Source: Podarcis muralis (taxonomy: Eukaryota). From it: DNA of 64,000 nt. Of this stretch, positions 10,630-52,225 are shown piece by piece. Below the pieces are notes generated by a model. It was given only the letters and a program-made list of their open reading frames with translations, was not told the origin of the DNA and searched no databases. The position numbers were made by a program, and so were the translations under genes. The stretch is from the NCBI RefSeq assembly GCF_964188315.1, contig NC_135667.1, forward strand, positions 14,136,001-14,200,000. The letters are read 5' to 3'. Numbering within the stretch: position 1 is the stretch's first letter; each line of letters opens with the position of its first letter.

Positions 10630-10721
10630 TAAAGGCCAGATCCTGTCCCAGGAATTGGCTGAAAGCCCAGGGCAGCTGCTATGCATATTTTGACTCTCAG
10701 AAAACTTGGTCTGAAGCTGAG
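10630..10721 (+). CDS. Lectin B exon 3
   Basis: catacag|; (V)KARSCPRNWLKAQGSCYAYFDSQKTWSEAE|gtaag; 92 nt. Confidence 0.95.
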
Positions 10722-11800
10722 GTAAGAAGCTGTTTCTCACCAACCAAGCTGTCACATCAGGTGCTGTCATGGGTTTCAGATGACATTTTTGTGAGGAGGG
10801 CTATCAGTGTGAGCTGTTGGGAGACAATACCTGGCCAGCATCTTGGTATAATCAAAAGAGAGTTGCTCACCCATTGTGTTCAATTAACCTGTTTCCACAG
10901 GAGCCAAGAAAGCTTAATTAACAGTCAGGAGAGATGGCCTGGCAAGAAGGTACCATCTCACAAGTGAAAAGATGTGAGATATCTCTGCCCCTTTGTCCCT
11001 CCAGCTTGCATGTGAGCAGGAGGGACCTCAGGGCTCACTCAGCTGGGGGGGGGGGGAGTGGAGCCTTCCCACCCCCAAGCCAAGCAGCGCAAACAAGATG
11101 TGTCATCCTCAGCTCTGCAGGGTGTTGGGATGAAAGTGCCTCATCTCTTGCAATGAGAGCTGTGGCCGTTTTACCCCATGCCTTGAGGGCTGGGGCCAAT
11201 ACAGATTGTTGTTTCAACATCATGGTGTATCGACAGATTGTGATGTTTGGCTGGTGATACATCATGGTGTTGAAAACCTGACATCACCCAGCTAGTTAAG
11301 AACAACTATTTCAAACATTAAGATAATAGTTAAATTCAAGGATAAGCTCCAAAACCAGATTAAAACACAGGTCAACATTCTGCATAACTGCATAGGCTTG
11401 TCTAAACAAAGATGTTTCCAGCATCGGCTGAAAAGAGTTCAGCCAAATCATGACAATGAGCATCCTTCCTGCATTCATCCCAGTTTTTGTGTATGAGCTT
11501 CAAGGTGGTTTTCTTGCACCAAGATTGAGTGCTTTAAGCACCTTTAATTGCACTCGTGTGCAGCAGGTCCAGCAGGTTTCTTTAGTTTCCCAGCAGGTCC
11601 AGAGGATGGAGAAAGGGGCCTGGCTCCACTCACAGCATTTTCTTCACCCCTTTTTCTCTCTTCCTTCCTCAGCTGCTTTAGTTCCTATTTGAAAAACTTC
11701 CAACTCTCCACCACTGGTGTTTTATGATTTTTAAATAATTGTTATTGCTTATTTGACAAGTTGTGAACCACTCTGGGAAAGCTTTGTGGGAAAGAGTCTT

Positions 11801-11845
<45 letters not shown>

Positions 11846-11887
11846 GTAATAGCAGTTGAACTTATTTACTTGCTTGGCTATTCTCAG

Positions 11888-12028
11888 AATGAGTGCCTAA
11901 GCTATGGCTGTGGGAGCCATCTTGCCTCCATCCTCAATGAGAAAGAGTCAGATGTGGTGGCCAATTACATCTCTGCACACCAGAAAAATGCAAGCCAGGT
12001 TTGGATTGGGCTGCATGATCCCACTGAG
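11888..12028 (+). CDS. Lectin B exon 4
   Basis: ttctcag|; NECLSYGCGSHLASI...VWIGLHDPTE|gtgagt; 141 nt; WIGL motif. Confidence 0.95.
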
Positions 12029-12570
12029 GTGAGTTGCCTTTACTTTCTCAATTTCAGGCCATTGTCACTGAGTAACAGCTTCTTAGCATCACCATTCCAT
12101 CCTTATCCGAATCGTCTCCCCATGTGACTCCAATATGTGACTTTTCCACAATTTTCTTATAGAATCCTCCTCTAATATTGTTGTGGTAGTGGGGAGATGA
12201 TTAACATATTCAATCCTCCTGGCAAACTGGGAATAATATCCCCTCACTCACCCAAGTTTAGGATGTTCCACCATTCTCCAGCAGAGTTTCTTGTTCTTTG
12301 AGGAAAATAAGTGGCTCACGTAAATGTAAACTAAGCTTTGAATAATAAAGAAAACTGTAACAAAATAACAAAATAAGAGAAACTAAATACAACAACATGA
12401 GGCTAGTCTGAGGCAAGAAGCGAGAAGATGCAGTTGGTCCCTCTTAACTGATATTCTTAACGGAACACAGACACTGAAGGGAGGGGCTCCGGAGCAAAAC
12501 ACACAAGTCCCGCCCACCAGATACCAAGCACTCTACTATTCAAATTAGGTCCCAGTGTTTTTCCTACAAA

Positions 12571-12824
12571 TACAATCGTACCTGGTTCTCGAACACCTTG
12601 TGACTCAAATGTTTTGGCTTCCAAACACCGTAAACCCGGAAGTGAGTTTTCCAGTTTGTAAACGTTCTTTGAAACCCTAACGTCTGATGTGACTTCCGTA
12701 GCTTCTGATTGAGTGCAGGAAGCTCCTGCAGCCTATTGGAAGCCACACTTTGGTTTTTGAATGTTTTCGAAATTCGAACGGGCTTCCGGAAAGGATTCCA
12801 TTAGAGAACCAAGGTACAACTGTA
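12571..12824. mobile_element. Tc1/mariner (Tigger-like) MITE in lectin B intron 4
   Basis: TA-caatcgtacctgg ... ccaaggtacaactg-TA; same family as 2723-2957. Confidence 0.78.
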
Positions 12825-12936
12825 TCTCCATCATAAACTGGCAATAGCTTCATAACTGGCCAACTCTCCACGTGATCTTTGCATTGGCCGCCTCGTTTCG
12901 AATGAATGTATGATCTGTTCTATCACATTGCTGCAG

Positions 12937-13051
12937 AAAGGACATTGGAGGTGGTTGGATGACGAGATCTACAATTACAAACGCTGGGATTCTCATCGCC
13001 CAGACAACTACAACAATGAAGAATATTGTGTGCATCTGCTAAAGGACGCAG
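12937..13051 (+). CDS. Lectin B exon 5
   Basis: ctgcag|; KGHWRWLDDEIYNYKRWDSHRPDNYNNEEYCVHLLKDA+G|gtaagc; 115 nt. Confidence 0.95.
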
Positions 13052-13724
13052 GTAAGCAAGCAATTTGTAGGGACTGATCAAAAAAAGGTTTCATGCCTAT
13101 CACTCCATCAGTTTCAAGTATTTCAAAGGGTAGTATCTGATTTTAAAAACCAGAAAAATCAAACTCAAAATACTCTGGTTAGTCATTGCTACTGATGGTT
13201 CATTCATTTGAAAAGGTTTACTCTGGGTATTAGATGAGTAAATACAGTGGCAGAGCTTCATGCTCTGGCACTGGGGGGGCGGAGAGCAGGTGGGGGCGGG
13301 GCTGGTGCACATCCTGGGGGCAGGGGGGGCTGCTTGCAGGGCTGGGGTGCCCAGCACTGGTGGGGGGAAGCCACGATGGCACCCTGCCCAGATCGCCCTG
13401 CTAGGGGCAGGGCACTCCCCTCTCACTCCTCATCCTCTGCCAGTGAGTGGATACACTCTCAGCCTGGTGCTTCTCTGTACTAAGGTTCACAAGTCAATAT
13501 CTCTGGAGATCTGACCAGAAGTGGTCCAACTTATTGATCCTTTAGGGACACTTCCAATCATACCATGAAGCAGAATCTTTTTCTGCAGTCAACCTTCATT
13601 CTTCGGTTGCATGTGATCACATATTTTGTTCAGAAAACAGTGGTTGCCAAACTAAGGTCTGGGTTATGCCATCTTATATTCTATCATGTTTCTTAACAAA
13701 ATGATTAGGCTCAAAGAGCATTTT

Positions 13725-13880
13725 TCTTCTTCTTCTTCTTCTTCTTCTTCTTCTTCTTCTTCTTCTTCTTCTTCTTCTTCTTCTTCTTCTTCTTCTATAC
13801 CCCACTCATCTGACTGGGTTTCCCCAGCAACTCTGGGTGGCTCCCAACAGAATATTAAAAGCACAATATAACATATAAGA
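13725..13880 (-). mobile_element. L2 3' tail fragment with (GAA)n microsatellite tail
   Basis: Reverse complement of the L2 3' end (cccagagttgctggggaaacccagtcagatgagtggggtat) abutting (TTC)n. Confidence 0.85.
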
Positions 13881-14214
13881 CTTTGAAGCCAGGTGATCAG
13901 TGAGTGACCTTCATATGTTTTGTTAGTTCTGGGTCACAGCCCTGCTGTGAGTCTTGAAAAGTCCAGACTCACTGGAACAAACTCTGGGGTTGGGGCAAAT
14001 GTTGAAAATGCTTTTAAATTTAAAATTTTTAATCTGTGGCGTTTTAAATTTGGGTTTTTTGTTTTGTTTTTGCTCTGTCGGGGGGGGGGGGGATAAACAT
14101 TTAGTTGGGCCTGGGGATTAGTTTAACTTTAGTATAATTATAAATTGTTTGTTGCTGTTGCTTTCTACTGCTTTATTGGTTCATTGTATAGTTTGTATTC
14201 TGTTCTGAAGGGGA

Positions 14215-17058
14215 GAGGGTCAGGACTGTCTGGGAGTGGGCCCCAGTCAACAGAATGGCTGGGGTGCACTTGGACACCTGATCTCAGTGATCATGGGTAG
14301 GAGGAGGCGTGACGCTAAGACCAGACCATGTCATTAACGAGGAGGCAGGTTTAGTTGTTGTTTGAAGACTATCCCTGCCTCTGGGTCTGGTCTTGACCAC
14401 AAGGATACTGGAATCAACAAGGGAGACCCACATTACCTGAAGGTGCTGCTGTGCAATGCCAGGTCAATGATTCACAAGACCACTGAGATCCACGGCAGGA
14501 TGGAGGACTTGACCTGGCATGTGTAACAGAGACTTGGCTGGATGAAGAAGATGGCCCTGTCCTTGCCACTGCTTGTCTACCAGGTTTCTCTTACACAGCA
14601 ACCCAGCTCATATGGGCGGGGAGGCGAGGTTGCAGTGAGTTTTAGGAAGTCAATAGCTTGCACCAGGCGTCCTATTGGGAAGACCCAGTTTTCTGAGCGT
14701 GTGTTCTGGAAGTTGGACAACAGGGGCAGTACAGGATTCCTTTGGTGTACTGACCTCTCTGCTGTACCAAGGATTCCCTGCCTGAGCTGCTTCAGGTGGT
14801 GGCGGATGTTCTCCTGGAGACACCTAGTTTGGTTGTCCTAGGGGATTTAACATCCATGCTGATACGACCTTACAAGGCACTGCTTGGGACTTCGTGAAAA
14901 GCATGACCTCCATGGGGATGTCCCTGAATGAATTTCACCCAACTCATTGTTGCGGACATGCCTTAGACCTGGAGTTCACCTCTATGGATGTGGGTGATCT
15001 GACACTAAGTAAAAGCGAAACAAAAGAAGTGCCATGGTCAGATCACTTCCTGGTGCCACAACCCTTTCCCTCTGCAGGGAGGTGGGACTGATTTGGACCC
15101 CCCCTCCACTTAATGGATTCAAATGGTTTCCAGAGTGTAGTAGGGGATGTTTTATCTCATGTTGATGGCCTTTCAGCTGATTCCCCGGTGGCCCGCTGGA
15201 ATGCGGAGTTAAGCAGAGCTATCGACTGTCTGGCTCCAAAGCGCTCTCTCCAACTGCATGGAGCCTGGCAGCCTCATTGTTTTCCCCAAACCTGAGGGTG
15301 ATGAAACAATCACTGTGGTGGCAATAGCGCCAGTGGTGGAAATTGGACCAGAAACGGGTTAGAGCTCAACGTCAAACCTACCAAGTGGCAATAGCGACGG
15401 TGAAGAGGTCCTTCTTCACTGCCTCTATTGCATCTGCAGAAAACAGCAGCAGGAGACTCTTTCAGGTGGTTCACAGTCTAACAGAACCACCTTCACCATT
15501 GGGGCCTGGTAAGGACCCCAAGATCTCCTGCATTGATTTTGCAACTTTTTTGCAGGCAAAGCCGCTCAGATTCGGAAAGAGGTAGATGCCATCATGGGAG
15601 CAGGGCTGGAGCAGGAGAGTGCTAGAGTCCTGTCTATTCCAGTTGCATGGGATCAGTTCCAATCTGTTACCTCCGAGGATGTGGACAGGCTGCTTGGATG
15701 AGTGAAACTGACCACCTGTCTCCTCGATCCTTGCCCATCCTGGCTCATAAAAGTGAGCCGGGAAGGGCAGGGTGATGGGCTCCGGGGGATAGTGAATGCT
15801 TCCCTCTGTGAGCAAGCGTTCCCGGAACCGCTGAAAGAGGCAGTTATTAAACTGCGTCTTTAAAAAACATCTTTGGACATGGCCAATATGGACAACTATC
15901 ACCCAGTATCAAATCTTCCATTCTTGGGCAAAGTGACTGAGCAGGTGGTTGCTGAACAACTCCAAGCACGCCTGGAGGATGCGGACCATTTGGATCCCTT
16001 CCAATTGGGATTCAGGCCTCATCATGGGACTGAAACTGCCTTGGTCACGCTGGTCAATGATCTCTGGTGGACTAGGGACAAAGGTGAAAGCTGTTTCCTA
16101 GTTCTGCTGGATCCCTCAGCGGCCTTTGATACCATCAACCATGGCAACCTTCTGGACTGTCTAGAGGCGCTAGGAGCTGGGGGCACTGTTATATAGTGGT
16201 TCTGCTCCTTCCTCCTGGGCCATGTTCAGAAAGTGGTGGTGGGGGCGAGTGCTCAGACCCCTCACTTGTTGGGTGCCTCAGGGTTCTGTCCTCTCCCCCA
16301 TGCTTTTCAACATCTACATGCAGCCGCTGGGAGAGATCATCAGCGGGTTTGGGCTGGGTGTTCATCAGTATGCGGATGATACCCAGCTCTACCTCTCTTT
16401 CAAATCAGAACCAGTGAAGGCGGTGAAGGTCCTTTTTGAGTGTCTGGAGGCAGTTGGGGGATGGATGGCAGCTAACAGATTGAGGCTGAATCCTCACAAG
16501 ACAGAAGTACTGTTTTGGGGGGACAGGGGGATGGCAGGTGTGGAGGACTCTCTATGTTCTGAATGGGGTAGCTGTGCACCTGAAGGACCAGATGTGCAGC
16601 CTGGGACTCATTTTAGACTCACAGCTGTCCATGGAGGCATAGGCCAATTCTGTGTTCAGGGCAGCTGCCTACCAGCTCCATCTGGTAAGCAGGCTGAGAC
16701 CCTACCTGCCTGCAGACTGTCTTGCCAGAGTGGTGCATGCTCTAGTTATCTCTCGCTTGGACTACTGCAATGCGCTCTGTGTGGGGCTACCTTTGAAGGT
16801 GAGCCAGAAACTACAACTAATGCAGAATGCGGCAGCTAGACTGGTGACTGGGAGTGGCTGCAGAGACCATATAACACTGGTCCTGAAAGACCTACATTGG
16901 CTCCCACTACGTTTCTGAGCACAATTCAAAGTGTTGGTGCTGATCTTGAAAGCCCTCAATGGACTCAGCCCAGTATACCTGAAGGAGTGTCTCCACCCCC
17001 ATCGTTCAACCTGGGCACAGAGGTCCAGCTCTGAGGGCCTTTTGGTGGTTCCCTCACT
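14215..17058 (+). mobile_element. Long degenerate L2 LINE (APE endonuclease + RT) in lectin B intron 5
   Basis: KVLLCNARSM..K and LACVTETWL (APE); [42 protein letters not shown] and YADDTQLY (RT); many frameshifts; 3' tail missing. Confidence 0.92.
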
Positions 17059-17089
17059 ATTATTAAAGTCTGAATCCATTTTATTCCCC

Positions 17090-17332
17090 CAGTGTGGTGT
17101 GGTGTAGTGGTTAAGAGCGGTGGACTCGTAATCTGGTGAACTGGGTTTGATTCCCCGCTCCTCCACATGCAGCTGCTGGGTGACCTTGGGCCAGTCACAC
17201 TTCTCTGAAGTCTCTCAGCCCCACTCACCTCACAGAGTGTTTGTTGTGGGGGAGGAAGGGAAAGGAGAATGTTAGCCGCTTTGAGACTCCTTAAAGGGAG
17301 TGAAAGGCGGGATATCAAATCCAAACTCTTCT
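17090..17332 (+). mobile_element. tRNA-derived SINE (squamate family, exact name uncertain)
   Basis: A-box gtgtagtggtt and B-box gtttgattcc; near-identical copy at 35001-35240. Confidence 0.85.
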
Positions 17333-17413
17333 ACACATTGGGGAAAGGAATAATAGGCAATAAGAAGTAACTTTCCTTATTTCTTGAATTACAATTTTTG
17401 TTTTGAATTTCAG

Positions 17414-17475
17414 GTTTTAAGAAGTGGAATGACGTAAAATGCAACAACAAGTACGCCTTCATCTGCAAGCAATAA
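17414..17475 (+). CDS. Lectin B exon 6
   Basis: tttcag|; (G)FKKWNDVKCNNKYAFICKQ*; WND motif. Confidence 0.95.
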
Positions 17476-29016: not shown

Positions 29017-29108
29017 CAAGGGCCAGATACTGTTCCAGGGGTTGGCTGAGAGCGCTGGGCAACTGCTATGCATATTTTGATAGTCTAAAGTCATGGTCTG
29101 CAGCTGAG
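29017..29108 (+). CDS. Lectin C exon 3
   Basis: catacag|; (A)RARYCSRGWLRALGNCYAYFDSLKSWSAAE|gtaag; 92 nt. Confidence 0.95.
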
Positions 29109-29584
29109 GTAAGAAGTTGGTTCTCACCAACCAAGCTGTAGCATAAGATATTGTTGTGGGTTGCACATGAGATCTTTTTGAGGAGGGCTATGTATGTGAG
29201 TTGTCCTGAGACAATACCTGGCCAACATTTCAAATTGAGTTGCTCACCCAACATGTCCAAGGGATGTGTTTCCATGGGAGCCACGAAGGCTTAATTAACA
29301 GTCAAGACTCCTCAAGGGTGGCAACTTAAATAAAATAAGGGGCGTGGAAGTGGCTGGTAAGCCCTGCTCTGCACAATCGATCACAAGACATGGCACACAC
29401 ACACACCCCATTGGAATGGCAATGCCCATCACCTTTGGGAACCCGCCCCCTCAAATATTTTATTGGGGGGCTAAAGGGACCTTGGCCCAAAAGAGTTGGA
29501 TCCTGTGGTCAGGAGGGATGGCCTGGCCAGAATGTATCCACTCACCATTAGGAAGAGGCAAGTCATCTCTCTTACTGAAAAGAA

Positions 29585-29738
29585 TACAATGGTACCTCGG
29601 GTTAAGCACTTAATTCATTCCGGAGGTCCGTTCTTAACCTGAAACTGTTCTTAACCTGAAGCACCACTTTAGCTAATGGGGCCTCCTGCTGCTGCCGTGC
29701 CGCCGGAGCACAATTTCTGTTCTCATCCTGAAGCAAAG
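29585..29738. mobile_element. Tc1/mariner MITE, truncated (same family as 33863-34092)
   Basis: TA-caatggtacctcgggttaag left end; followed by an L2 3' tail fragment (~29741-29847). Confidence 0.75.
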
Positions 29739-29967
29739 TTTAGGGAAGTTTTTAATGTCTGATGTTTTATCATGTTCTTAATATTTTGTTGTCTTGGGAG
29801 GGAGGTCCGGTCAGATGGGTGGGAGATAAGTTGTTGTTGTTGTTGTCATGTTGTCTTTTTGATACATTGTGAACCACTTTGGGCACCATTATGTGGGAAA
29901 GTGTCCTACAGTTAAGCGGATGATGATAGTGGTGGCAGAATGACTTTAGTGCCTTCTCTATTCTCAG

Positions 29968-30108
29968 ATTGCATGCCAAAGCCATGGCCGTGGGACCCAT
30001 CTGGCTTCTATACACACAGAGCAAGAGTCAGCCTTGGTGGCCAAGTACATCTACTCAAAGCAGAAGAGAAAATATAATGTCTGGATTGGTCTCTATGATC
30101 CCTATGAG
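29968..30108 (+). CDS. Lectin C exon 4
   Basis: ttctcag|; IACQSHGRGTHLASI...VWIGLYDPYE|gtgagt; 141 nt. Confidence 0.95.
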
Positions 30109-30495
30109 GTGAGTTCCCTTCAATTACTCTATTCCAGGTCATCATCACAGCACAGTGGCTCCTTAGCAATGCCATCCTATCATCTCCCAGGCTGCATCCC
30201 ATAATTATTTCTCCAATATTTTACATAGGGGCCAGGCATGCTGGGTTCCACCCCACATTAGGGGTGCCCACACATGCAACACGTTGCCGCTCCCTGCCAG
30301 CCCCCCACAGAGAACATTTTGTGGGTGCCTCAGCACCCATGGCCCTGCATTGATGGTGCTTATGGTAGGGGCTTCTTCTCTAATGTCTCCATCATAGCTT
30401 GCAAGAGCTTCCTGCTGAGCAACCTCCTCTGAAGATCCTTGCACTGAGCTACAAACCTCCTTGGTCAAATGAGCTGTTCCTTCTCTTTTCTACAG

Positions 30496-30610
30496 AACCG
30501 AGATTGGAAGTGGCCTGATGATTCAATCTTTAATTACAGCAACTGGAACGGATGGGAGCCAAACAACTCTGACGGCAAGGAGTATTGTGTGGAGCTGAAA
30601 CGTAGGACAG
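30496..30610 (+). CDS. Lectin C exon 5
   Basis: ctacag|; NRDWKWPDDSIFNYSNWNGWEPNNSDGKEYCVELKRRT+G|gtagga; 115 nt. Confidence 0.95.
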
Positions 30611-31227
30611 GTAGGAAAACTATTTGCATGCCTGAGAAAAAAGGCGTTTTCACCTTGAATGCTACATTACCCTCCGATTCCCTATAAATTTCCAACCTTT
30701 CTCAGGGTTGCATCTGACTAAATTGCACTGAAAATACCTCTGTCAATAGACCCAAATTAACCACCACTAATTAAAGTCTATTGATTTTAAGGGATCCAAT
30801 TATGAGTCATATTTAACCTTCAACCAGGTGTTCGCTTGTAGAAATGTTTACAGATCAATTACTCTGGCTAGCAGTGGTCCATTCATTTAGCATTTAGCAT
30901 CACTGCCCAACACACCAGGAGGCTTCAGCTGTAGCTCATCTACATAGTTTAGTTGCCTGTGTTTTATTTGCATGCATACTCATTTACATATTATATTCTG
31001 GAAACAGTGGTTTTTCAAGTGGGCCATGTCATATTATTTTCTACAGTATTTCTCTAAGAAGTGGTTAAAGTCAGATAAAGAAACAAAATAAGGCGTCACA
31101 TTAAAAAAGACCCGATTTCAGCTGCAAATTTTGAATCAGGAGCACACATGAGGTTGAAGTCAGGCAACTGTCGGATGGGCAACCCACATGGGGTCGGTCA
31201 TTTCTGGATCAGTCTATCCTGCCCAAT

Positions 31228-31410
31228 CTAGGGTTGCCATACGTCCGGATTTTCCCAGACATGTTCGGGAATCGGGGCCTGAAAATGGCATCTGGGCAGC
31301 AAAGCAGCAAAATGTCTGGGAAAACCCGGACATATGGCAACCAGGGCTATTTTCAAAGGAAAATGTTTCAAACATGCTTTAAAAGCTGGAAATTTGGGGT
31401 GGTGGGGTGG
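31228..31410. mobile_element. Probable non-autonomous hAT-like DNA element
   Basis: ctagggttgccatacgtccgg end and internal gaaaacccggacat(a/t)tggcaacc inverted sub-repeats; TSD not resolved. Confidence 0.5.
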
Positions 31411-31865
31411 TGGAAGGGAGATGTTCACACAAAAAACCCTCAAAAAAAGAAAAAAGCTCAGGCCGGCCCTCACTTGTTCCTGGTGCACCTTGCAATTTCA
31501 ATTTGAGTTAACTGGGCATGATCTGAGTGCACATTTGCCCAGATGGATGGCATGTGCGCAGAGCGGTGGCGGCTGCCGAAAGGAGTCAAGCACCCCGGGC
31601 TCAGTGCAAGTCAGGAGGAAGCCCAGTTGGTGATTGTCCCAAAGCCGCTTACCTTGAATAGGGGCCTGAATAGGGTTCAGGGAGGGAGGCGGTGTAAGGC
31701 CCGAGCAAAAAGAAAAGAAAAGAGCTCAACAAGTTTGTCCGGATTTTTAGTATCTGAAATATACCCTAGTCAAATCCAATTCCTAACCCAGACTCCAAAC
31801 CACATCCATTTGGTTATGTAATAATGGGCAAGAAATAGTAACTTTTGTCGTGTCTTGAATTTTAG

Positions 31866-31933
31866 GTTTCCGAAAGTGGAATGATGAACCTTGTCAGCAT
31901 TTGAATACCTATATCTGCAAAAAAGAGCTTTAA
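31866..31933 (+). CDS. Lectin C exon 6
   Basis: ttttag|; (G)FRKWNDEPCQHLNTYICKKEL*. Confidence 0.95.
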
Positions 31934-32645
31934 AGGAGACTGGAGTTCCCAACTCTGCCTGCTTAGTGGATGTGTCTCTGATCTCATTCCTTCCTCTCCC
32001 ATCCATCAAAGGGGAAAAAACAGCTCTTCTTCATTTTTAAAATAACCTCTTCTATAGAGCTACCTCTGTGGTCTTCCCATTCACTTGGAAGTTTCCTTGT
32101 TACTTCTGCAAAATATAATCCTAATAAACTCGCTTACGTGTATTCTGTTTTCACTGAGTCCATCCTTATTGCTCCAGTTCCAGTACCATATATCTGAAGA
32201 CTGGGGAAGGGGCAATTCCTGCACTGGAGTTCCCAGGGAAAAGAAGCACATTGTATCTAAGGGGCCCCAGTCCAGCACTGTCGCCGATACCTGACAAGGC
32301 ACTCAGGGCAACATGTAGGTGAAACTTCCTATCCCAAACCCAACGTCTTTTCTCAGAGGTGCTCAGCAGAGCTGGTACTAAAGCTGGGATTTTGAGAGCT
32401 GGGGACAGGGGGAAAAGTAAGGGGATCCCAGACTACCTGACCAGTGCCAAATCCTGGGATGCTAAACCAAACATCCCTGCCCCAATTGCTCACCTGTAGG
32501 CCCTTCTCTGTGCTAGACATGAGTGATTTTGTCTGGCTGGAATGACTATGATTGTCTGGATGGTGGATAGAGAGATAGGAGTAAAGCAGCCTCTGACCTT
32601 TGCCTGGCTTGAAGGCAGTCTACTGTGCAAAGGCAAGAGTCCCCA

Positions 32646-32788
32646 TCACCACCACCACCACCACCATCAATTATTATTTATACCCCGTCCATCTGGCTGG
32701 GTTTCCCCAGCCACTCTGGGAGGCTCCCAACAGTATATTAAAAACACGATAAAACGTCAAACATTAAAAACTTCCCTAAACAGGGCTG
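32646..32788 (-). mobile_element. L2 3' tail fragment
   Basis: Reverse complement of the L2 3' end with a TAA/GGT-type tail. Confidence 0.82.
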
Positions 32789-33862: not shown

Positions 33863-34092
33863 TACAGTGGTACCTTGGGTTAAGTACTTAATTCATTCCA
33901 GAGGTCCGTACTTAACCTGAAACTGTTCTTAACCTGAAGCACCACTTTAGCTAATGGGGCCTCCTGCTGCCGCTGCGCTGCCGGAGCACGATTTCTGTTC
34001 TCATCCTGAAGCAAAGTTCTTAACCTGAAGCACTATTTCTGGGTTAGCGGAGTCTGTAACCTGAAGCGTATGTAACCTGAGGTACCACTTTA
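33863..34092. mobile_element. Tc1/mariner MITE, full length
   Basis: TA-cagtggtaccttgggtt ... aacctgaggtaccactt-TA TIRs. Confidence 0.82.
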
Positions 34093-34199
34093 AGCATGTT
34101 TTTTAAAAGCAATTTCCCCCAGTACAATGCATTTTTACACTTATCTATGAATTTGTATGAACAATAGTTTTGGGATTTTTTTATATACGTTACCTGAGG

Positions 34200-34325
34200 A
34201 CAGCATTGCAAAATTCAGAGAAGTGTGAGTTTCAAAGGTTGGCTGTGTTTCAGCTCATGAATTGTTTTTAGAAAGTGTGAGTAGGCCTGGTTTTCATTTT
34301 GAACTGAATTGAACTTCTCCCCCAT
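34200..34325. repeat. Unclassified dispersed repeat (related copies ~33440-33560, ~41970-42130, ~54740-54900, inverted ~49670-49790)
   Basis: Shared ttcaaagg.tggctgtgtttcagctc...aaagtgcaaatt...gaactgaatt motif string. Confidence 0.6.
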
Positions 34326-35000
34326 CCTCAGTCTTGGTTAAGCAATAGGCAAACCGGGGGGGGGGGGGTGCTGGGTGGTGGCATCAGGCAGAGGCATAAG
34401 ACTATAGGCTTATAGAGGTGTAAGAAAAATCTAACCCAGGGAAGCTGCTCAGGGAGATCTTTGGCACTGATGTGTGTCTCTGTCTCTCTCTGTGCTGTGA
34501 CATTTAGGCATAATAAAACCTGTGACCTGACTATCCTACTGATTGTGACCATTTATGCAAAAGAGAAGAGAGCTAGGAAAATGGACACGGGGCCATTAGA
34601 TGCACCAAGCCCATGCAAGCAAAGTAAAACAAAATGGAGGATGTCCAGCTAGTGCTCAGTATTGTCCCTTATTCATGTCTGTTATGTTCAGTTAAAACAA
34701 GTCTGCGAAAGGACTGGGTAACTTGCTATTGTTGAATTGCCATCTTTTGATATTGCTTAATGCTTCCGATCCTTGAATTTGCATTTGTATGTTAGGAAAT
34801 ACTCATGGTCAGTTCCTCATTTGGAAACACTGACTTTGGGGTGGGGCGGGGAATGTGTGCCTGAGAATATTGAACAGCTTTTTCTTAACTAGAAGCTCTA
34901 GGCAGCATTTTCCTGGGGCAGGAATCTGGTTTAAAATTTAGTGTAGCATTCCAGAACATGGCGCTGGTCAGGTTAAATGGGATTCCCTTGCAATTTCCCA

Positions 35001-35240
35001 GTGTGATGTAGTGGTTAGGAGTGGTAGTCTCGTAATCTGGGGAACCGGGTTTGATTCCCCGCTCCTCCACATGCAGCTGCTGGGCGACCTTGGGCTAGTC
35101 ACGCTCCTCTGAAGTCTCTCAGCCCCACTCACCTCACAGAGTGTTTGTTGTGGGGGAGGAAGGGAAAGGAGAATGTTAGCCGCTTTGAGACTCCTTAGGG
35201 TAGTGATAAAGTGGGATATCAAATCCAAACTCTTCTTCTT
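35001..35240 (+). mobile_element. tRNA-derived SINE (same family as 17090-17332)
   Basis: Near-identical to 17090-17332; A and B boxes; (TCT)n end. Confidence 0.85.
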
Positions 35241-35683
35241 TCCCTGTCCTCATTTTGTGGCTTCTAAAATTCTGGATTTCATATCAACTGCGCTGAGCAG
35301 CTCTAAGGAAAGGTGTTTGTTTTGGGGATGAAATTTGTGGTGACATCTGGATTTGAGTGCCTTGTGTGTTGTGAACAGCAGTGCTAGACACAGTGAGAGT
35401 TAGACACAGCACACCCCTGTTCCTGGGACTCTCATGCAAGGAGTGACTCCTTATCGTGAGATTTGTGCTCTGAGAATTGGTGCTGTAAGGACTGATGGGA
35501 TGAGAAGGACAGAATCATGACAAGAAATATATGCATAAGAGATTATTAGGAGTACATTGTATTGAAACCTATCTTGGAAATAATGGATGAGAGTTGATCA
35601 CTGAGGGATTGGAGAGGAGGTAATGATTCCAGAGAGCTGTCCATCAATCACAGAAGGCACAGTTGGGAATGACAGTTGCTGGA

Positions 35684-35763
35684 TTAGAGTTTTTTCTTGC
35701 AGATGTAGCTGTTGAGTTGGTTGCAGTTTCTATCATTCCATTTCACAAAACTGTAAACGGTTT
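35684..35763 (-). CDS. Lectin D exon 6 (acceptor choice uncertain, see findings)
   Basis: ttctcttttaaag|AA ACC GTT TAC AGT TTT GTG AAA TGG AAT GAT...; (E)TVYSFVKWNDRNCNQLNSYICKKKL*. The alternative CAG 13 nt downstream is out of frame. Confidence 0.75.
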
Positions 35764-36389
35764 CTTTAAAAGAGAACAAATGACAGAATTAGGTCCAGAA
35801 GTTAGGAGGCACATGAAGAATAAATAGTCTGGATTAATTTTGCTTTCTGATCTTAGATTTTCTACATCCCTTAGTCAACACTTTCCCTATGGTGAGGAGA
35901 ATACACAACTCAGACTTTAGCCTGGCAACCAGTTTTCAGAATACAACATGAATGTGATGGCGGTGGTGGTGATGGTTGCTACAAATTGCATACCACCCTT
36001 CATCCAAATATCCCAGGGCAGTTGTCACGTACAATTTACTATGCAGATAGGCTGTAACTGAACCATTCTACATTGTGGTATGTTGGAAGTGACCCTAAAT
36101 GCTGAACAAATAAATCACTGCTGTTCCACTCTACAGAGTAATTATCTTTGCTGTAAAGAAACAAATACCTGACCAACAGTTGTATCCAACTAACGCATAC
36201 TCAGAGTATACTCCTTAAAATTAATGGACTTTCATAAAATACTAACCTGGGTCTGCTGATTTTGATGGAACTATTTTGAGTATGACTTACAATCCTGAGA
36301 GAAGTAGGACATTGATGGAGAAGTGTGTGGCCATGTGGAACTCAACATCTAATTGTTATTTTGTCAGACATTGCAAATGGTTTCCTTAC

Positions 36390-36516
36390 CTGGAAAATAT
36401 AGGAGCTCCACACAATGCTCATAAGGGGCCCAGTCGTCTGGTGTGGTTGGGTACCAGGATTTGTAACCTTCGTCGAACTTGTAGACTGATCCATCAGGCC
36501 ACCTCCAACGCCCATT
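36390..36516 (-). CDS. Lectin D exon 5
   Basis: cttgcag|; NGRWRWPDGSVYKFDEGYKSWYPTTPDDWAPYEHCVELLYFP+G|gtaagg; 127 nt (12 longer than paralogs). Confidence 0.93.
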
Positions 36517-36760
36517 CTGCAAGATTGAGACATTATAGATCATGTAAGTAAGGAAATGAGGAGCCTGGTGTCAATATTATCTGGATATGTTGGTCTGTGG
36601 GAAGGTAGTGCCAGCTATGAATGAGACAGAGGAGGAGCTGCATGGAAAATAATATTGATGTAGCATGTGGGGTTCATTCTTGGATATTATTATATGAGGA
36701 TGCTAAGGAGCCACTACTCTATGACAACGACTTTGAATAGAGCAAGTGAAGGCAACTCAC

Positions 36761-36892
36761 GTAATGAAGCCCAATCCATACGTTGCTTTGTTCTTGCTGG
36801 GATGCGGAGATGTGCTTGGCAATCAGGGCTGTCTCATCCACATTAAGGATAGAGGCAAGGTGAGCCCTATGGCCATAGCTACGGCATGCAGT
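36761..36892 (-). CDS. Lectin D exon 4
   Basis: ttcttag|; TACRSYGHRAHLASILNVDETALIAKHISASQQEQSNVWIGLHY|gtgagt; 132 nt (9 shorter than paralogs). Confidence 0.92.
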
Positions 36893-38129
36893 CTAAGAAT
36901 GGAGAAAGAATGAAAGACGTTTTGCCACAACCGCCATCAGAACATGTTTCTTTATATACCACTTTCCCCAAAAAGTCATTCCCATAGTGTCTCACAACAC
37001 ATCAGATAACAACAGTTCAAAAACCATATCTCACTAAAAGGAATGATGCAGAGTTGGAGCTTTGCAAATGTGAACAAGTTTGTGGAACATCAACATTTTT
37101 ATTTATTTCTCTGAAATTTGACTTTCAAGAGGCAGGTCTTACTGGTAGACTGTAAGGAATTAGTGTCACATACCAAGTTGCGAGGCTTAAACTTTTGTGC
37201 ACTAATGGCACCTCCAGATCGACAGCATTTCACACAAGGAATTCAAGCACATAACAGGAAGTGTAGGTTTGCATAATTAATCCACTTAAACAAATAAATG
37301 AACAAATGTAGGAGCATGTTCTTGCCTCCTCATCTAGGGTGAATGCTGGATGAGTGGTCAATTAAAAGGTCATCTGGAGAAACCCTAAGCCGGTCTTCCT
37401 ACAAACCCTTTTTTTTTTAATGTAGAACTTTTAGGTGGAAGCATTTTTATGCAGAATGTTGAAAAAGCTGCAAAAGGTTACAGAAAGGGAGTATTACATT
37501 TAAATAGAGGCAAGGAAAGTTGAACTTGGGAGATTTGCTTTGCAATGCCTAATTTATTTTAACTTGAGCTCTGGAACCCAAATGATCAGGACTGCATCCA
37601 ACCTGCTGCATTCCTTTCACAGCACTGCAGACCACACAGCATACACTGTTATGTCACCCTTGCACTGAAAAGTTGCAGGGGTGCAGTACATACGTAATGT
37701 TTGGTAAATTGCCTTTGGAATTAGGTCACTGGGTGCTTTTTGACATTGTAAAAATACTATTCTGCAAATATATAGGCTGAGCATAGGCAGAAGATCAAAC
37801 ACTCCCATAGACTGCCAAAATCTGAAGTTCATACATGAGTTCTCTAGGGAGACAGCCAGAGCCATGAAATGTTTTGCGAACCCAGTCTCAGATCTGTTTC
37901 AGAACTGCAGTCTATTCTACTTTTCCACACAAAGATTTCTTCCCTCTTCTCCCGGTGGGAGGGGAGGATTTGGCATAACTGTCACATTCTCAGCTCCCAC
38001 GGAGACGCTTCACTGGAACATAAAGTGACCAACTCTCTTTTGTTAAGTCTGAGATGCTGGACAGGTATTGTTCCCGGGCAAGGATAGTCCTACTCACAGA
38101 AATCTGATAGGAGCCCAAAAGATGTAAAT

Positions 38130-38750
38130 TAGAAACATTAGGGAGAACTTTCTGTCAGCAAGATCTGTTTGACATAGGAAAGTTGTGGCCTCTCTTTCCT
38201 TGGAGGTTTTTAAGCCATGGTCGGATGGCCATCTGTCATGGATGCTGTGGCGATCACACAGGGTCCCCGGACGTTTGACGGTCTATTGACCCTGTGCCAC
38301 CACTGCGATTGCCTCTTCGCTGCCACCACCCCGTTTCTCTTCGGGGACACACGGAGTCCAGACAGTTGTTAACATTAACAAATAATCAAGTTTATTTGTA
38401 TAAGCATGAACAAATAACAACTTCAAACTGATTATTCCAACTATCTATCTGTCTCCACCTAACACTTCCTCTCACTCTCTCACCACACAACTTGACCAAC
38501 CCACAGACTCTTACTTCTCCAACTCCCAACGCTCAACTCTCAACTAACTTCCACACACCTCCGACTCTAACTTTTACTCCTCCCCTTGCATTCTCTCTGG
38601 CCAATCACATCACACTCATTTAACCCTTTCCTTATGACCCACCTAGGAGGCAAATGCCACAGATGCTTTAGTTGAGATTTCTACATTGCAAGGGTTTGGA
38701 CTAAATGACCCTTGGAATACCTTCCAATTCTATTATTCTATGATTCTATT
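38130..38750 (+). mobile_element. CR1 LINE 3' fragment, split by a solo LTR
   Basis: ggatggccatctgtcatggatgc|tttagttgagatt...ggactaaatgaccctt...ccaattctattattctatgattctat, the CR1 (ATTCTATG)n-type terminus. Confidence 0.75.
38246..38661 (-). mobile_element. Solo LTR (416 bp) in lectin D intron 3
   Basis: TGTGGC...GCCACA terminal inverted repeats; 5-bp TSD gatgc at 38241-38245 and 38662-38666; AATAAA on the - strand at 38391-38396. Confidence 0.88.
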
Positions 38751-38780
38751 ACATCTTGGTTGAGGAGAAATATTTCTTAC

Positions 38781-38872
38781 CTCAGCATCTCTCCATGACA
38801 ACTTGGTATCAAAATATCCATAGCAATTACCCTGGTTTTGCAGCCAACCATCAGGACAGGACAGGGCCTTGG
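38781..38872 (-). CDS. Lectin D exon 3
   Basis: cctcatag|; (A)KALSCPDGWLQNQGNCYGYFDTKLSWRDAE|gtaag; 92 nt. Confidence 0.95.
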
Positions 38873-39459
38873 CTATGAGGAGAAAGGAACAAATAGTAAG
38901 AAGGTTGTTCTTTATGTGAAATCTTATTTTAGCTACACTGCTAAAAGGGGTGACTGCTTTGAGCAATCACAGATAATTTTGAAACCAATGAATATAGGTC
39001 TAACCTAAACCATTGCTCTAATAGCCTTAACTGGGTAACCATCGCTTGAAAATATAACAAGCACTATTGATATAATGCCACTTAACCCAGATAAAGATTT
39101 CTACAGCTCCTCTCATGCTTTTTTGGTCTCATGGCCTGCCTCAAAGATGAGCTATGTAGACTGAAAGGGGCAAGGCAATGTAAAACTGCAGAAAGAGAGA
39201 CAGGCAGACAGAGCATAAAAGTGTGAAAGAAGGCAGAGTGTGAAAGAAGGATTGTCCCCAAGGAGGGAATAGAGAACTGGCTGGAGACACAACAGCTGAG
39301 GATAAGCTGAGGAGAAACAACAGCTGAGGATAAGAAGAGCAGCACAGGTTAAAAGCGTGAAACAGAGAGATAAGGAGGTGGAGGAGGTTATATGCAAGGG
39401 AGGTTATATGCAGAGGGAAGGGGAAAAGTGAAGAAAGGAGAGAAATAGATTGAGAAAAT

Positions 39460-39970
39460 AAGAGAAGCTTTTTTACTAGGAATTCTAGGTGCATAAATAC
39501 CAAAGGAGCAGAAAAGACTATTCATGTATGTGACGACAGCTGCGCAAATACTATTGGTCCAGAGATGGAAGGAAGATAAAGTTCCGACCAGAGAAGAATG
39601 GTTGATAAAGATGATGGACTACGCTGAAATGGCAAAAATGACTGGGAAGATCAGGAATCAAGAAGATAATACATTTAATAAAGGATGGGGGGGGGATTTA
39701 TAAGTTACCTTGAAGAATACTGCAAACAATTAAAAACATTGGCAGAATTATAACAACACTTGTAACGTAACAAGTGCTATGGTATGACTTGAATTTTAAG
39801 AATAAATAGAGAACATTATATGATGCAGGTGGGTAAAGGTTAACAATGGAAGCCATGGAGGAGTAGAGGGAAGTCTAAGGATTCAGGGAATCCTATATTT
39901 TTATGATTTTGATTTATATTTGAGTGAAAATGTTAAATGTAAAACTGAATTATTATTATTATTTTAAAAG
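39460..39970 (+). mobile_element. L1-clade 3' fragment in lectin D intron 2
   Basis: EAFLLGILGA...LFMYVTTAAQILLVQRWKEDKVPTREEWLIKMMDYAEMAKMTGKIRNQ. Confidence 0.8.
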
Positions 39971-40451
39971 AGAAAACAAGAGAAGCAGAAAGATGGTAAG
40001 GGCAAGAATAAGCACTACCAAAGGAGGATTCTTATTCCAGCAGAGCCCAGATGTGAATAGAGAACCAAAATATTCAAAGAGTGCAATAGGACTGTCATTT
40101 GGTGAACAGTGTTCTTTCCTTGAGGATATGTTTGAAAGACAATATTATCTTGGAAGCTTTCTCAGAGTAACATTATCTCAAACTTGACATTGCTAAGCAA
40201 GCTTGAATTCCTGAATTGTGATAGTAACTAGGATTACAAGCCCAAGAAGGGTTGATATAAAGAGTAAGATAGTAAGGGAATATTAATCATAATTCTCTTG
40301 TGTCTGCATTCTTGATTGCCTGCCATAATATTATGACTTAGACTTAAAAGGGGGGGAATAAATGAATTAATTATATTTATATGGACACCTGAAGGACTAG
40401 GGGTAAATAGTTTGCATTGGGTAATTCTAAAAAATTGGTTAAAATGCTCAC

Positions 40452-40518
40452 CTCCTGGAAAAGAACCGGAGACCAGGACTCCAAGAAGACAACAGGCGAA
40501 GGAGGTAACAAATCCCAT
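40452..40518 (-). CDS. Lectin D exon 2 (signal peptide)
   Basis: aaag|gtctaccacaagATG; MGFVTSFACCLLGVLVSGSFPG+G|gtgagc; 67 nt. Confidence 0.92.
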
Positions 40519-47954: not shown

Positions 47955-48022
47955 TTACAGCTCTTGCTTGCAAATGAAGGTATTCATTTCATCACAGATT
48001 CTATCATTCCACTTCCGTAAAT
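47955..48022 (-). CDS. Lectin E exon 6
   Basis: tttcag|; (D)LRKWNDRICDEMNTFICKQEL*; 68 nt. Confidence 0.95.
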
Positions 48023-48332
48023 CTGAAATTTGAGATAATAGACTCATACATCAGTTTGGCAACCACTGTTTTCTGGATAAAATATATAAGTGAAGATAAT
48101 TACATGCAACCAACCTATGCAGACTGGATGTAGTCAAAGCCTTCTAACTCATGCTCAACAAATGGACCCCTGCTGATTTGGTGTACAGAGTAATTAATTT
48201 GTGAACCTTGGTACAGATAAGCACATGGCTGAGTGTTGTATCCAACCAACTCAATCTCAGAGTAAACTCTTTAAATTTAATGGATTGTAGGTAGCAATGA
48301 GGTATGAGTGATGATTGTAGGTAGTGATAAGA

Positions 48333-48687
48333 GGGACGCGGGTGGCGCTGTGGGTTAAACCACAGAGCCTAGGACTTGCTGATCAGAAGGTCGGTGGTTC
48401 GAATCCCCGTGACGGGGTGAGCTCCCGTTGCTGGGTCCCTGCTCCTGCCAACCTAGCAGTTCGAAAGCACGTCAAAGTGCAAGTAGATAAATAGGTACCG
48501 CTTCGGTGGGAAGGTAAACGGTGTTTCCGTGCGCTGCTTTGGTTCGCCAGAAGTGGCTTAGTCATGCTGGCCACTTGACCCGGAAGCTGTACGCCGGCTC
48601 CCTCGGCCAATAAAGCGGGATGAGCGCAGCAACCCCAGAGTCGGTCACGACTAGACCTAATGGTCAGGGGCCCCTTTACCTTTACCT
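48333..48687 (+). mobile_element. Sauria SINE in lectin E intron 5
   Basis: gggacgcgggtggcgctgtgggttaaaccacagagcc head, B-box ggttcgaatcc, (ACCTTT)n tail; ~11-bp TSD taggtagtgat at 48318-48328 and 48687-48697. Confidence 0.93.
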
Positions 48688-48820
48688 AGGTAGTGATGAC
48701 TAAGTACAACTTTGTTAGATACAATCTTGAGAAATATTGGCAACGGATGAAGAAGCAGATGGCAATGTAAAATCCAAGATGCAAATGTCTTCTTCTCAAC
48801 CCTGGAAATGTTTTCCTTAC

Positions 48821-48935
48821 CAGAGCCGTGCAGCAACTCCACACAATACTCCACGCCATCCACGTTGTTTGGTTCCCCTGTTTTCCAGCTTCGGTAATTG
48901 AAGGTTGATTCATCAGCCCACCTCCAACGCCCATT
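48821..48935 (-). CDS. Lectin E exon 5
   Basis: cctgcag|; NGRWRWADESTFNYRSWKTGEPNNVDGVEYCVELLHGS+G|gtaagg; 115 nt. Confidence 0.95.
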
Positions 48936-49444
48936 CTGCAGGAATGATATGGAAGAGATCATGCAGTCATTTGAAATGAGGAGCTCCGTTAAAAGATCAT
49001 GTGGAGCATTGAAACAAAATAAAGAAATTCCTTCCAGTAGCACCTTAGAGACCAACTAAGTTTGTTATTGGGTTGTTATGTGGAGCATTGGTCAGAGTGA
49101 AGCGATTGCCATTTAGGATGGAGATATTAGAGGACCCCCATAAACATAATGGAGAAGTTAAATATTGGATTAATCCTGGGAGATGATTGAGATAAGGACT
49201 GAATGGTGGTGTTAAGAAGCCACTATTCAATGATTAGGGGTGCCAACTTGAATAAAATATTGGGAAGGGAGCTGGTAAGGCAAGGCCCCTATAATCTATC
49301 ACACATTTGAATGACAGTGCCCAATAATGGGGGGAAGGGGCTGGCCCCCTCAAATATTTTATGGGGGGAGGGACCTCAGCCCCTAGGAGTTGGCTCCTAC
49401 ATCACTGACAATGGCCTGAAATAGAATAAGAGTAGACAACTCAC

Positions 49445-49585
49445 CTGCCGGGGATCTTGGAGCCCAATCCAAACATTACTTGGATTTTTCTGGTATGTGG
49501 CAATGTGCTTGGCTACCAAGGCTGCCTCTTTCTCAGTGAGGATAGAGGCAAGGTGGGTCCCACGGCCATAGCTCTGGCACTCAAT
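49445..49585 (-). CDS. Lectin E exon 4
   Basis: tttttag|; IECQSYGRGTHLASI...VWIGLQDPRQ|gtgagt; 141 nt. Confidence 0.95.
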
Positions 49586-50691
49586 CTAAAAATGGAAGAA
49601 ACGAAGGATACTTTGTCACAATTCAATGCCCCACTAGCATGGGCGGGGGATGAATTCAATTCAGTTCCCATTTAAAAGCCAATCCCTCACGTTCAAATTG
49701 TCCAACAAGAAGAAAAAAAGATAAGGAAGGAAGGAAGGAGACTGAAACACAGCCATATATTGAAATTCACACTTAAAGAGCATGCATTAGGGGAAAGTCT
49801 GCATTAAAAGGAATCCATGGGTGAAGACAACATGTACAATGAATCATATGAGGGGAAAGGTACAAAACTGCATAGAAAACTGTGTTTGCCAGGATAAATT
49901 TGAACTAAAATGCTGAAGAATTTTCATGAGAAATAAATAAATAAACAAACAAACAAATGACAGATTGCTGCAGAAATGTGAGGAACGGAATTTAAAATTG
50001 GAAGAATGAGATACTGCAAGAAAAACACACACCACATATTCGTACCTACCAATACCAAAGTGAAATTCTCAAAAGGTGAGGTTCCCTGTGGAACTTGTCA
50101 GATGCAATGTTACTATTCTGACAGCACCTCCAGGCTCTGAGTATTTTGCATGAGGAATTGAAGGACATACCAACGTACAATTAGAGGGAATAAAAATGAT
50201 CTGTGATTTTAGGGCAATAAATCTACTACAGAAACAATAATTTTTGAGGTTAGGAAAGTGATGGAGAAATGCTTAGAAAAGTGTGGGATGGATGGACGAT
50301 TAATAGGATGTTATATAAACACTCATGCAAATTAAGATGAATGTTCATTGTTGTATAATCTCTCTACATTCTAATAGCCACTTAAGGTTTTTGAAACCAA
50401 ATAAGGAAACATAGCTGAATACAAATATCACATGAGGGAGCTGTAAACTGGTCTAACAAACTGAAAATCAGCATTATTTTAATTGTTAATATTGTGAAAG
50501 CTTCAGAAAGACAGAATATGTGTTTGGCTATATTTAAGGAAATCTGAGCTTTGAAGGATTTCCTTTGGAATATCAAACTGATATTAGCTCAAGCTCTGCA
50601 ATCCAGGAGGTTAACTTTCCATCCATCTGGCTGCATTCTTTTTTTGACACTCCAGACCACACAACCCACTAGTAAACCATAGGATGTAAAC

Positions 50692-50926
50692 CAGCCTTTC
50701 TCAACCTGTGGGTCCCCAGATGTTGTTGAACTACAACTCCCATCACCCCTGGCTAGCAAGGCCAGAACTCAGGGATGATGGGAGTTGTACATAGCTGTCA
50801 ACGTTCCCCCTTTTTAAAGGGAAATTCCCTTATTCTGAATAGGATTCCTTGCAAGAAAAGGGAAAAGTTGACAGCTATGGAGTTGTAGTACAACAACATC
50901 TGGGGACCCACAGGTTGAGAACTGCT
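50692..50926. mobile_element. Palindromic MITE with a nested 90-bp hAT-type mini-element (50790-50879)
   Basis: Outer ends tttctcaacctgtgggtccccagatgttg ... caacatctggggacccacaggttgagaa; inner TIRs catagctgtcaac/gttgacagctatg with 8-bp TSD gagttgta (50782-50789, 50880-50887). Confidence 0.88.
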
Positions 50927-51059
50927 TAAACCAACCCGTTCTCTAAAGCTATGAAGATTTGCAGGAGTGTAGCATTTACCTTGGGTTGGTAAAGCCACTT
51001 CCGCGCTGGAGAGGAGGTGGGGTTGTGGGCCCCATGCCCACTTCACATGCATGGGGGCT

Positions 51060-51767
51060 GACTCACAGCCCCCACAAGACTGGAGGAATCCTCGGACATG
51101 TCATCCCCATGGCCAGCCAATCGGCTGGCCAGGGAGGCGTGGCCTGGGCTAATTAGGGCTGGTGCGGCTAAGGATTTCCCTCTCTTCTTCGCTCCAGCTG
51201 CTCTGATTTCCCACCCCGCCCACCCTTAGGTTTGGCTCTACGACATTGCTATGGACTTCGGTTGGTCGCCGTCAAGGGGCCTGGTAGGAATTTTTTCCAC
51301 TTGGCAAATTGGCACCAACCATTTGGTTTTTCGCCTACCTCGTAGCAAATCGTCACAACATCCTCAGCATTGGCGGTTAGGCATTGGTAAGGGTGTTGTT
51401 ATGCAGATGGGGGGGGGGGAGGAAGCGCCATCACCTTCCCCCAAAGTGAAGGGTAGTCCGGTAAAGGATTCCGGGGGGGCGTTGCCCTGTCTGAAGCCTA
51501 TGGAGGTGTGGGCCTAAGGCACGCCCCCGAGCGGTGACCCCGGGGGAGCTCCTAGTTGATGTACATCAGCAGGACTCCCCCTACTGTCGGCTAACCCTTG
51601 CCGGTCTTCAAGCAATCAGGCCGAAGCCGGTTAGTCGATAGGACCAATGCCTAAGCCAATACCGCTCAATTCCTGCAATCAATAATGGGCCTTTTTCGCC
51701 CATTAACCTTAAACGCTGTGTCTTGTGTCTTATTTTCCAAGGGGGGAGGCGGGTACTCGCCAGGCAA
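51060..51767 (+). mobile_element. Coding-less relative of the YR element (terminal segments joined) in lectin E intron 3
   Basis: ~51067-51135 aligns to ~45100-45175 and ~51368-51767 aligns to ~47058-47472; no ORFs between. Confidence 0.8.
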
Positions 51768-52133
51768 ATCCCTTTGGAAGTCACAGGAAGCTAAGTGGCC
51801 TCTTGTAATATCTGAGTCTATTCACAAATATGCATGTTGAGCACAGGTGGAGGGTCAAAACAAACACTTCAATAAGCCCAAGTTTGCATATTCCAAATGA
51901 TCTCTACAGAGGCAAACAATGTCTGACCCCCCCCCCCCCTTTTTAGCCCACATGCCTTTTCCTAAAACTGCACACTATTGTTCTTTTCATGCACAGATGA
52001 CTTCTTTCTTCTCCTGGGTTGGTAAACTACTTCACCTTATCATAACAAATCAAATCTCTTTTGTTCAGTCTAAGATGCTTCTCGTGTACTTTCACATAAC
52101 ATTATGCTTTCGTAGGAGAGGGATGTGCCTTAC

Positions 52134-52225
52134 CTCAGCATCTTCCCATGACATCTTAAAATCAAAATAAGCATAGCAGTTGCCCTGGTTTTGCATCCAG
52201 TCCCTGGGACATGAGCTGGTCTTCG
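52134..52225 (-). CDS. Lectin E exon 3
   Basis: catacag|; (A)KTSSCPRDWMQNQGNCYAYFDFKMSWEDAE|gtaag; 92 nt. Confidence 0.95.

Follow-up and report, generated by a model that had tools for sequence, protein, structure and literature searches.

Gene D and its neighbours in the lectin cluster

Gene D occupies the minus strand of the 64-kb window, the whole stretch of Podarcis muralis DNA that was analysed, and encodes a secreted C-type lectin in five coding exons that span 40518..35684. The coding part of exon 2 (40452..40518) starts with the ATG at 40518-40516, carries the signal peptide MGFVTSFACCLLGVLVSGSFPG and ends one base into a codon, with a G followed by gtgagc. Exon 3 (38781..38872), which begins with (A), carries the first two cysteines of the long-form CTLD. 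Exon 4 (36761..36892) is 132 nt long and ends with WIGLHY immediately followed by gtgagt, the D-P-x-E/Q stretch being absent. Exon 5 (36390..36516, 127 nt) contains a KFDE insertion and the sequence TPDDW and also ends one base, a G, into a codon. The coding part of exon 6 (35684..35763) reads (E)TVYSFVKWNDRNCNQLNSYICKKKL and terminates with the stop at 35686-35684. The acceptor in use, ttctcttttaaag, has its AG at 35764..35765 and places the start of exon 6 at 35763; a second AG, at the position equivalent to that of the paralogues (tttacag, 35751..35752), would start the exon at 35750 and now lies within exon 6. The 3' untranslated region extends over approximately 35480..35683, its end being placed where contig depth in runs X15 and X16 drops from 28,000-36,000 (bin 35479-35657) to 600-850 (bin 35300-35478).

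The exons were searched singly, and full-length steps used the public protein XP_028559734.2. The translations of exons 3, 4, 5 and 6 are exact substrings of this RefSeq entry ('struthiocalcin-1-like [Podarcis muralis]', 165 aa), of which exon 2 encodes residues 1-22, exon 3 residues 24-53 and exon 6 residues 141-165, and the junction residues fit. Because the entry is the exact productive form, gene D is annotated as coding with the upstream acceptor and not as a pseudogene. The 165-aa product described in the earlier note therefore equals the RefSeq protein, and its warning that automated annotation may call the gene a pseudogene was not borne out. A correct coding model of gene D was already known, and the annotation is left unchanged by the present finding. 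In a search of 1.84 billion cluster representatives, among which D itself does not figure, exon 4 retrieved squamate proteins at no more than 66% identity; XP_028559734.2 surfaced as a weak match in a word search that started from a Thamnophis relative, and it was recognized when the retrieved proteins were aligned to the window. The other members of its 90% cluster are P. raffonei XP_053216778.1 (165 aa), P. lilfordi CAI5791087.1 (213 aa) and the older version.1 of the P. muralis entry, which departs from.2 at two residues (G18S and R57H). The searches recovered orthologues with more than 90% identity only from these two other Podarcis species, and the orthologue comparison proposed in the earlier note revealed the same C-terminal sequence in both. 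A search with XP_028559734.2 returned nothing above 56% identity outside its cluster, the chimeric model A0A670J5X8 excepted. Literature searches on Podarcis C-type lectins and lectin expression, the D accession and the RefSeq names found no paper on gene D.

The chimeric UniProt entry A0A670J5X8 (168 aa, P. muralis) combines exons 2-4 of paralogue E (49445-52226) with exons 5-6 of D (36391-36519 and 35687-35763). The loose contig ends at 36516 carry the end of D's own exon 4, and the entry looks like a mis-joined gene model rather than a common read-through transcript. A further 5' exon 1 may lie upstream of exon 2. P. lilfordi CAI5791087.1 has an N-terminal extension of 48 residues, of which residues 5-45 match 44658-44780 (minus strand) at 95%, ~4 kb upstream of the gene D ATG; the extension may represent a coding reading of this exon 1, or else stem from an error of annotation. 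Sites of allelic variation in gene D occur at 38867 and in the regions of 40467 and 36883, and DNA run X2 has a C>T change at 38867 that converts Ala25 to Thr on the gene strand, just past the signal peptide. The introns harbor interspersed high-copy repeats (38164-38720 in intron 3, 39417-39774 and 35837-36015), over which the summed contig depth of X2 climbs from ~15 to values reaching 47,000; divergent contigs there number in the dozens, and false 'joints' are frequent.

A tblastn search of the window with the D exon peptides places gene D in a tandem cluster of five and yields three complete paralogues together with the tail of one more gene (745-816). Paralogue B (10635..17475, plus strand) is of the RPD type, and paralogues C (29022..31933, plus strand) and E (47955..52220, minus strand) are of the EPN type. 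E is the nearest upstream neighbour on the same strand as D and served as the reference for ancestral exon lengths. Exon 4 comprises 141 nt in B, C and E, where it ends with WIGL(H/Y/Q)-D-P-x-(E/Q) before gtgagt, as compared with 132 nt and the same gtgagt in D. Exon 5 comprises 115 nt in these paralogues and 127 nt in D, in which four added codons give SVY-KFDE-GYKSW. The motif is TPD in D, EPN in C and E, and RPD in B (exon 5, 12937-13050), so that D is not the sole member of the cluster with a non-canonical first motif residue. The comparison set for D comprised its four neighbours and another 40 tetrapod relatives; in the 46-sequence family alignment the loss of three residues after WIGLH, the gain of the four residues KFDE and the gain of four residues before WND are confined to the D clade, which identifies these length changes as lineage-specific and not chance variation. 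Invariant columns of this alignment include C28, C39, C56, C132, C153, C161, W92, G94 and W148. Every sequence feature that the earlier note recognized from the letters alone is borne out; these comparisons confirm an exon 4 that is three codons short, with WIGLHY running into the donor and DPxE/Q lost, a four-codon insertion and TPD in exon 5, and the retention of all six cysteines and WND.

Splicing at the start of exon 6

In all four paralogues, exon 6 is entered through tttYAG followed by RT TTN NNN AAG TGG AAT, so that the acceptor lies 11 nt ahead of TGG. At the ancestral position in D, tttacag is followed by T TTT GTG AAA TGG AAT, only 10 nt ahead of TGG, and the G carried from exon 5 joined to a start at 35750 reads V-L-stop. 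From the acceptor 13 nt upstream, ttctcttttaaag followed by AA ACC GTT TAC AGT TTT GTG AAA TGG, the sequence reads E-T-V-Y-S-F-V-K-W-N-D...KKKL-stop. Use of this acceptor lengthens D by four residues before WND relative to the paralogues, in keeping with the frame arithmetic (13 - 1 = 12 = 4 codons). The one-base deficit at the paralogue-equivalent acceptor and the restoration of the frame from the upstream site, both put forward in the earlier note, were reproduced. When D is aligned with the paralogues, about seven extra bases (GAAACCG) fall after the former pyrimidine tract and ahead of the former acceptor, and the 13 nt that are now coding are in part new sequence and in part former intron.

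The surroundings of the two sites differ. On the gene strand, 65 nt from 35829 to 35764 are free of AG, and the acceptor in use provides the first AG thereafter. The branch-point-like motifs CTAAC (A at 35802) and CTAAT (A at 35789) are located 38 and 25 nt upstream of it. Pyrimidines occupy 16 of the 20 positions preceding the used site as compared with 11 of 20 for the CAG at the ancestral position, which is preceded by the purine-rich sequence aaagaaaccg. Scanning is known to pick the first AG past the branch point and, with this layout, exclusive or near-exclusive use of the upstream acceptor is expected.

Contigs from one DNA run (X2) and three RNA-like runs, of which X15 and X16 are from P. 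muralis and X17 is from a closely related organism, were aligned to 35300-40650. All RNA evidence is in the form of assembled contigs, in which rare isoforms are dropped and which carry neither strand nor true abundance. X15 and X16 were classed as RNA by an automated guess that is supported by their spliced joints and by the contrast between exons and introns: mean word depth is 20,000-170,000 in exon bins and mostly ~10-80 in non-repeat intron bins, exon contigs being ~1000 times deeper than intron contigs, a contrast that is used only within each run because contig depth cannot rank genes. The joints 36516 to 36761 and 38872 to 40452 are present in X15, X16 and X17 and have CT..AC on the plus strand, corresponding to GT..AG on the gene strand. 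Contig record 17 of X17 spans 35588-35763, 36390-36516 and 36761-36894 with five mismatches and no gaps; it connects exon 5 with exon 6 at 35763. In the P. muralis runs, the loose contig ends at 36390 are AAACGGTTT (X15) and AAAACTGTAAACGGTTT (X16), which are the exact plus-strand letters of 35747-35763; this 17-mer occurs once in the window and matches neither the intron nor the letters expected for a junction at 35750. The comparison of the two possible junctions suggested in the earlier note thus shows 36390 joined to 35763 in all three runs. Gene D is strongly transcribed, its spliced mRNA being abundant in some samples. Almost none of gene D is present in X22, a third run from the same study as X15 and X16, which indicates that expression is specific to sample or tissue. 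Some X15 and X16 contigs end at 35689 and 35560 in the Illumina adapter letters GCTCTTCCGATCT; these ends are adapter read-through of a very deeply covered transcript, not biological ends.

Gene D is therefore intact and expressed, and its frame is kept by means of the upstream acceptor. Two other accounts of the exon 6 boundary were weighed. Differences of one base at splice sites are typical of assembly slips, and D has diverged further than any other member of the cluster, so that the missing base might be an assembly error or gene D a transcribed pseudogene. We regard this as hardly credible: an independent X2 DNA contig covers 35300-35853 without gaps and the RNA contigs agree with it, which establishes that the deficit is real, the same C terminus is encoded in the assemblies of three species, the frame is open through all exons, the structural residues are all kept, and dN/dS against the paralogues is below 1. 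According to the other account, the two AGs, 13 nt apart and the downstream one being a CAG at the ancestral position, form a regulated switch in which the upstream site gives the full lectin and the downstream site a product that ends after exon 5 and is without WND and two cysteines; with its stop codon in the last exon, such a transcript would be expected to escape nonsense-mediated decay. Such a switch, raised in the earlier note, seems very improbable. Among the best-supported joints and loose ends, those listed for the three RNA-like runs, none corresponds to a 36390 to 35750 junction, those at 36390 all being continued at 35763, although contigs drop rare forms and a rare truncated form would be compatible with them. 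In addition, the purine-rich sequence stands in place of a pyrimidine tract at the downstream site, and the upstream site is taken in the RefSeq models of two species as well as in the P. lilfordi model.

The reading of gene D as an intact lectin gene rescued by its upstream acceptor is borne out at each step. Measured against the family, the ancestral acceptor position of exon 6 is out of frame by one base; the spliceosome takes the first AG past the branch-point and pyrimidine region, 13 nt upstream; and 13 nt that align with intron, including bases absent from the paralogues, become coding, which restores the frame and extends the loop before WND by four residues. What preserves the frame is the choice of the first AG beyond the branch point as acceptor. 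The case presumably resembles the frame-preserving splice-site shifts that offset indels at exon edges (intron boundary sliding), and it provides a clean natural example of a gene surviving a frame-breaking change at an exon edge. The cost or benefit of the rescue lies in the four extra residues in the ligand-binding loop.

Fold and ligand-binding region

The 165-residue product consists of an N-terminal hydrophobic helix (residues 6-16) followed by one CTLD encoded by exons 3-6, with no other domain. Individual exons match the PF00059 profile (exon 4, E 3e-4, profile positions 11-47; exon 5, E 5e-3, 52-85; exon 6, E 6e-4, 87-107), and a precomputed PF00059 match is recorded for XP_028559734.2, the protein identical to D. 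The four core cysteines, the N-terminal pair of the long form and WIGL are all present. D has the organization of a REG/group VII free CTLD gene, with a signal peptide, a single CTLD and small exons, the domain being split over four of them. Structure prediction for the 165-aa form, one of the checks proposed at the outset, gave a confident CTLD: the AlphaFold2 model of XP_028559734.2, built with the 46-sequence alignment, has a mean pLDDT of 85.9, with the lowest confidence, 75-77, over residues 111-130, which form the most critical segment. Foldseek reported 500 matches, all with E ≤ 0.001, and those listed at the top are CTLDs without exception. The nearest are BJcuL (5f2q), struthiocalcin-1 (4uxm), the rattlesnake galactose lectin (1jzn) and lithostathine, with TM scores of 0.81-0.91 of target length (0.87-0.91 for 5f2q, 4uxm and 1jzn).

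In the model, WIGLHY forms a strand at residues 91-97, CVEL a strand at 132-135 and WND a strand at 148-151. These positions place all three length changes and TPD in or beside the long-loop region, which forms the calcium and sugar site in the CTLD fold. From the location of the three length changes and the replacement of Gln/Glu by Thr in this ligand region, we infer a rebuilt binding surface. The residues missing after WIGL are taken, from what is known of mannose-binding protein, to be ligands of the auxiliary calcium site, and this site (the D and E after WIGL) appears to be lost in D. At the principal site, four of the five side chains are kept (D124, E130, N149 and D150). WND (W148-N149-D150) and the Glu before the third cysteine (E130-H-C132) are present, and Trp126 follows TPD-D in the same way as a Trp follows QPD-D in the asialoglycoprotein receptor. 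The departure at calcium site 2 is the motif itself, T122-P123-D124 instead of EPN or QPD; the relatives have Q or E at its first position. In the usual arrangement a Gln or Glu here contacts the calcium ion as well as the sugar; substitution by Thr removes a side chain involved in both contacts, and calcium-dependent binding may therefore be lost.

The retention of four side chains at the principal site, together with the Trp after TPD-D, suggests ligand binding through one calcium ion, and we somewhat favour the view that D still binds a ligand in this way with a changed specificity. A plausible if less probable alternative is that D is intact and secreted and is no longer a lectin, presenting a calcium-independent surface like those of the REG proteins, struthiocalcin and ovocleidin-17. 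The replacement of QPD/EPN by TPD and the disappearance of the D-P-x-E stretch would both fit such a surface, as would the fact that the nearest solved relatives in sequence, REG4 and struthiocalcin-1, are not classical sugar binders. However, WND, E130 and D124 have been kept across a stem of 0.77 changes/site and are lost in REG4 and struthiocalcin, and Trp126 follows TPD-D as in the galactose-type receptors, observations that argue against this alternative.

Divergence of gene D and comparison with known lectins

In a tree of 49 proteins, the three Podarcis D proteins share a stem of 0.77 changes/site with tips of only 0.005-0.013 and are loosely grouped with paralogues E and B. Pairwise dN/dS between D and B, C or E, summed exon by exon, is 0.43-0.65, at dS values of 0.6-0.95 that are near saturation. 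For exons 5 and 6 together, dN/dS is 0.35-0.74 in pairs that include D as compared with 0.18-0.31 among the other paralogues. The pattern is best described as relaxed or faster change, not as demonstrable positive selection. Judged from these comparisons, gene D is an old duplicate under net constraint, with exons 5-6 changing somewhat faster, and not a decaying copy. Neofunctionalization is plausible in view of the length of the stem branch, the TPD motif and the indels unique to D. A more far-reaching proposal is that D is a neofunctionalised secreted lectin, to date seen in Podarcis alone, whose rebuilt loops (TPDDW, two four-residue insertions and the lost calcium site 1) confer a specificity unlike that of other vertebrate C-type lectins. 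We consider this rather doubtful; if it were true, the sample-specific expression at very high levels would point to a secretory role particular to this lineage, such as one in reproduction, mucosal defence or chemical signalling. With a high degree of confidence, the locus can be described as the intact gene for XP_028559734.2 that has undergone frame rescue and specifies a secreted CTLD of the REG4/squamate true-lectin group with rebuilt loops. D extends a known family by one divergent member and does not constitute a new type of system, and its case opens no long-standing question; as an unusually diverged, heavily expressed squamate REG4-like/true-lectin member it is a reasonable candidate for work on ligand and tissue.

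By its sequence relationships, gene D belongs to the REG4/squamate 'true C-type lectin' group. The squamate true lectins, including lizard and snake BpLec/LmsL/Cal-like proteins, belong to the same family as D by tree and by database names and have a common WIGL...WND framework with it. Among them, BJcuL (5f2q) and RSL (1jzn) are the best structural matches of D (TM 0.89-0.91 of target, 35-38% identity). Lectins of the BJcuL/RSL type have QPD and bind galactose through one calcium, whereas D lacks QPD, having TPD, and differs further in its extra loop residues and shorter post-WIGL segment. In snake-venom galactose lectins an extra cysteine links subunits into disulphide-bonded oligomers; mature D contains no cysteine beyond the six canonical ones. 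Since snake-venom lectins are members of the family, a reading of D as a toxin was considered and rejected: the host is a non-venomous lacertid, and nothing points to venom.

The avian eggshell matrix proteins struthiocalcin-1, dromaiocalcin-1 and ovocleidin-17 are the source of the RefSeq names given to D and to its P. raffonei orthologue. Struthiocalcin-1 has 39% identity to D and a TM score of 0.87. The name reflects similarity only; in the tree, the bird and turtle sequence that carries it is placed elsewhere, on long branches. REG4 (PDB 2kv3) and the group VII free CTLDs have, like D, a signal peptide and one long-form CTLD, and the cluster neighbours of D are named REG4-like in RefSeq. 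REG4 is the best solved sequence relative of D among single-domain proteins (E 1e-25; E 3e-9 with exon 4 alone). It has lost the motif and WND, the latter being replaced by WSS, whereas D keeps WND, E130 and D124 and has three loop length changes of its own.
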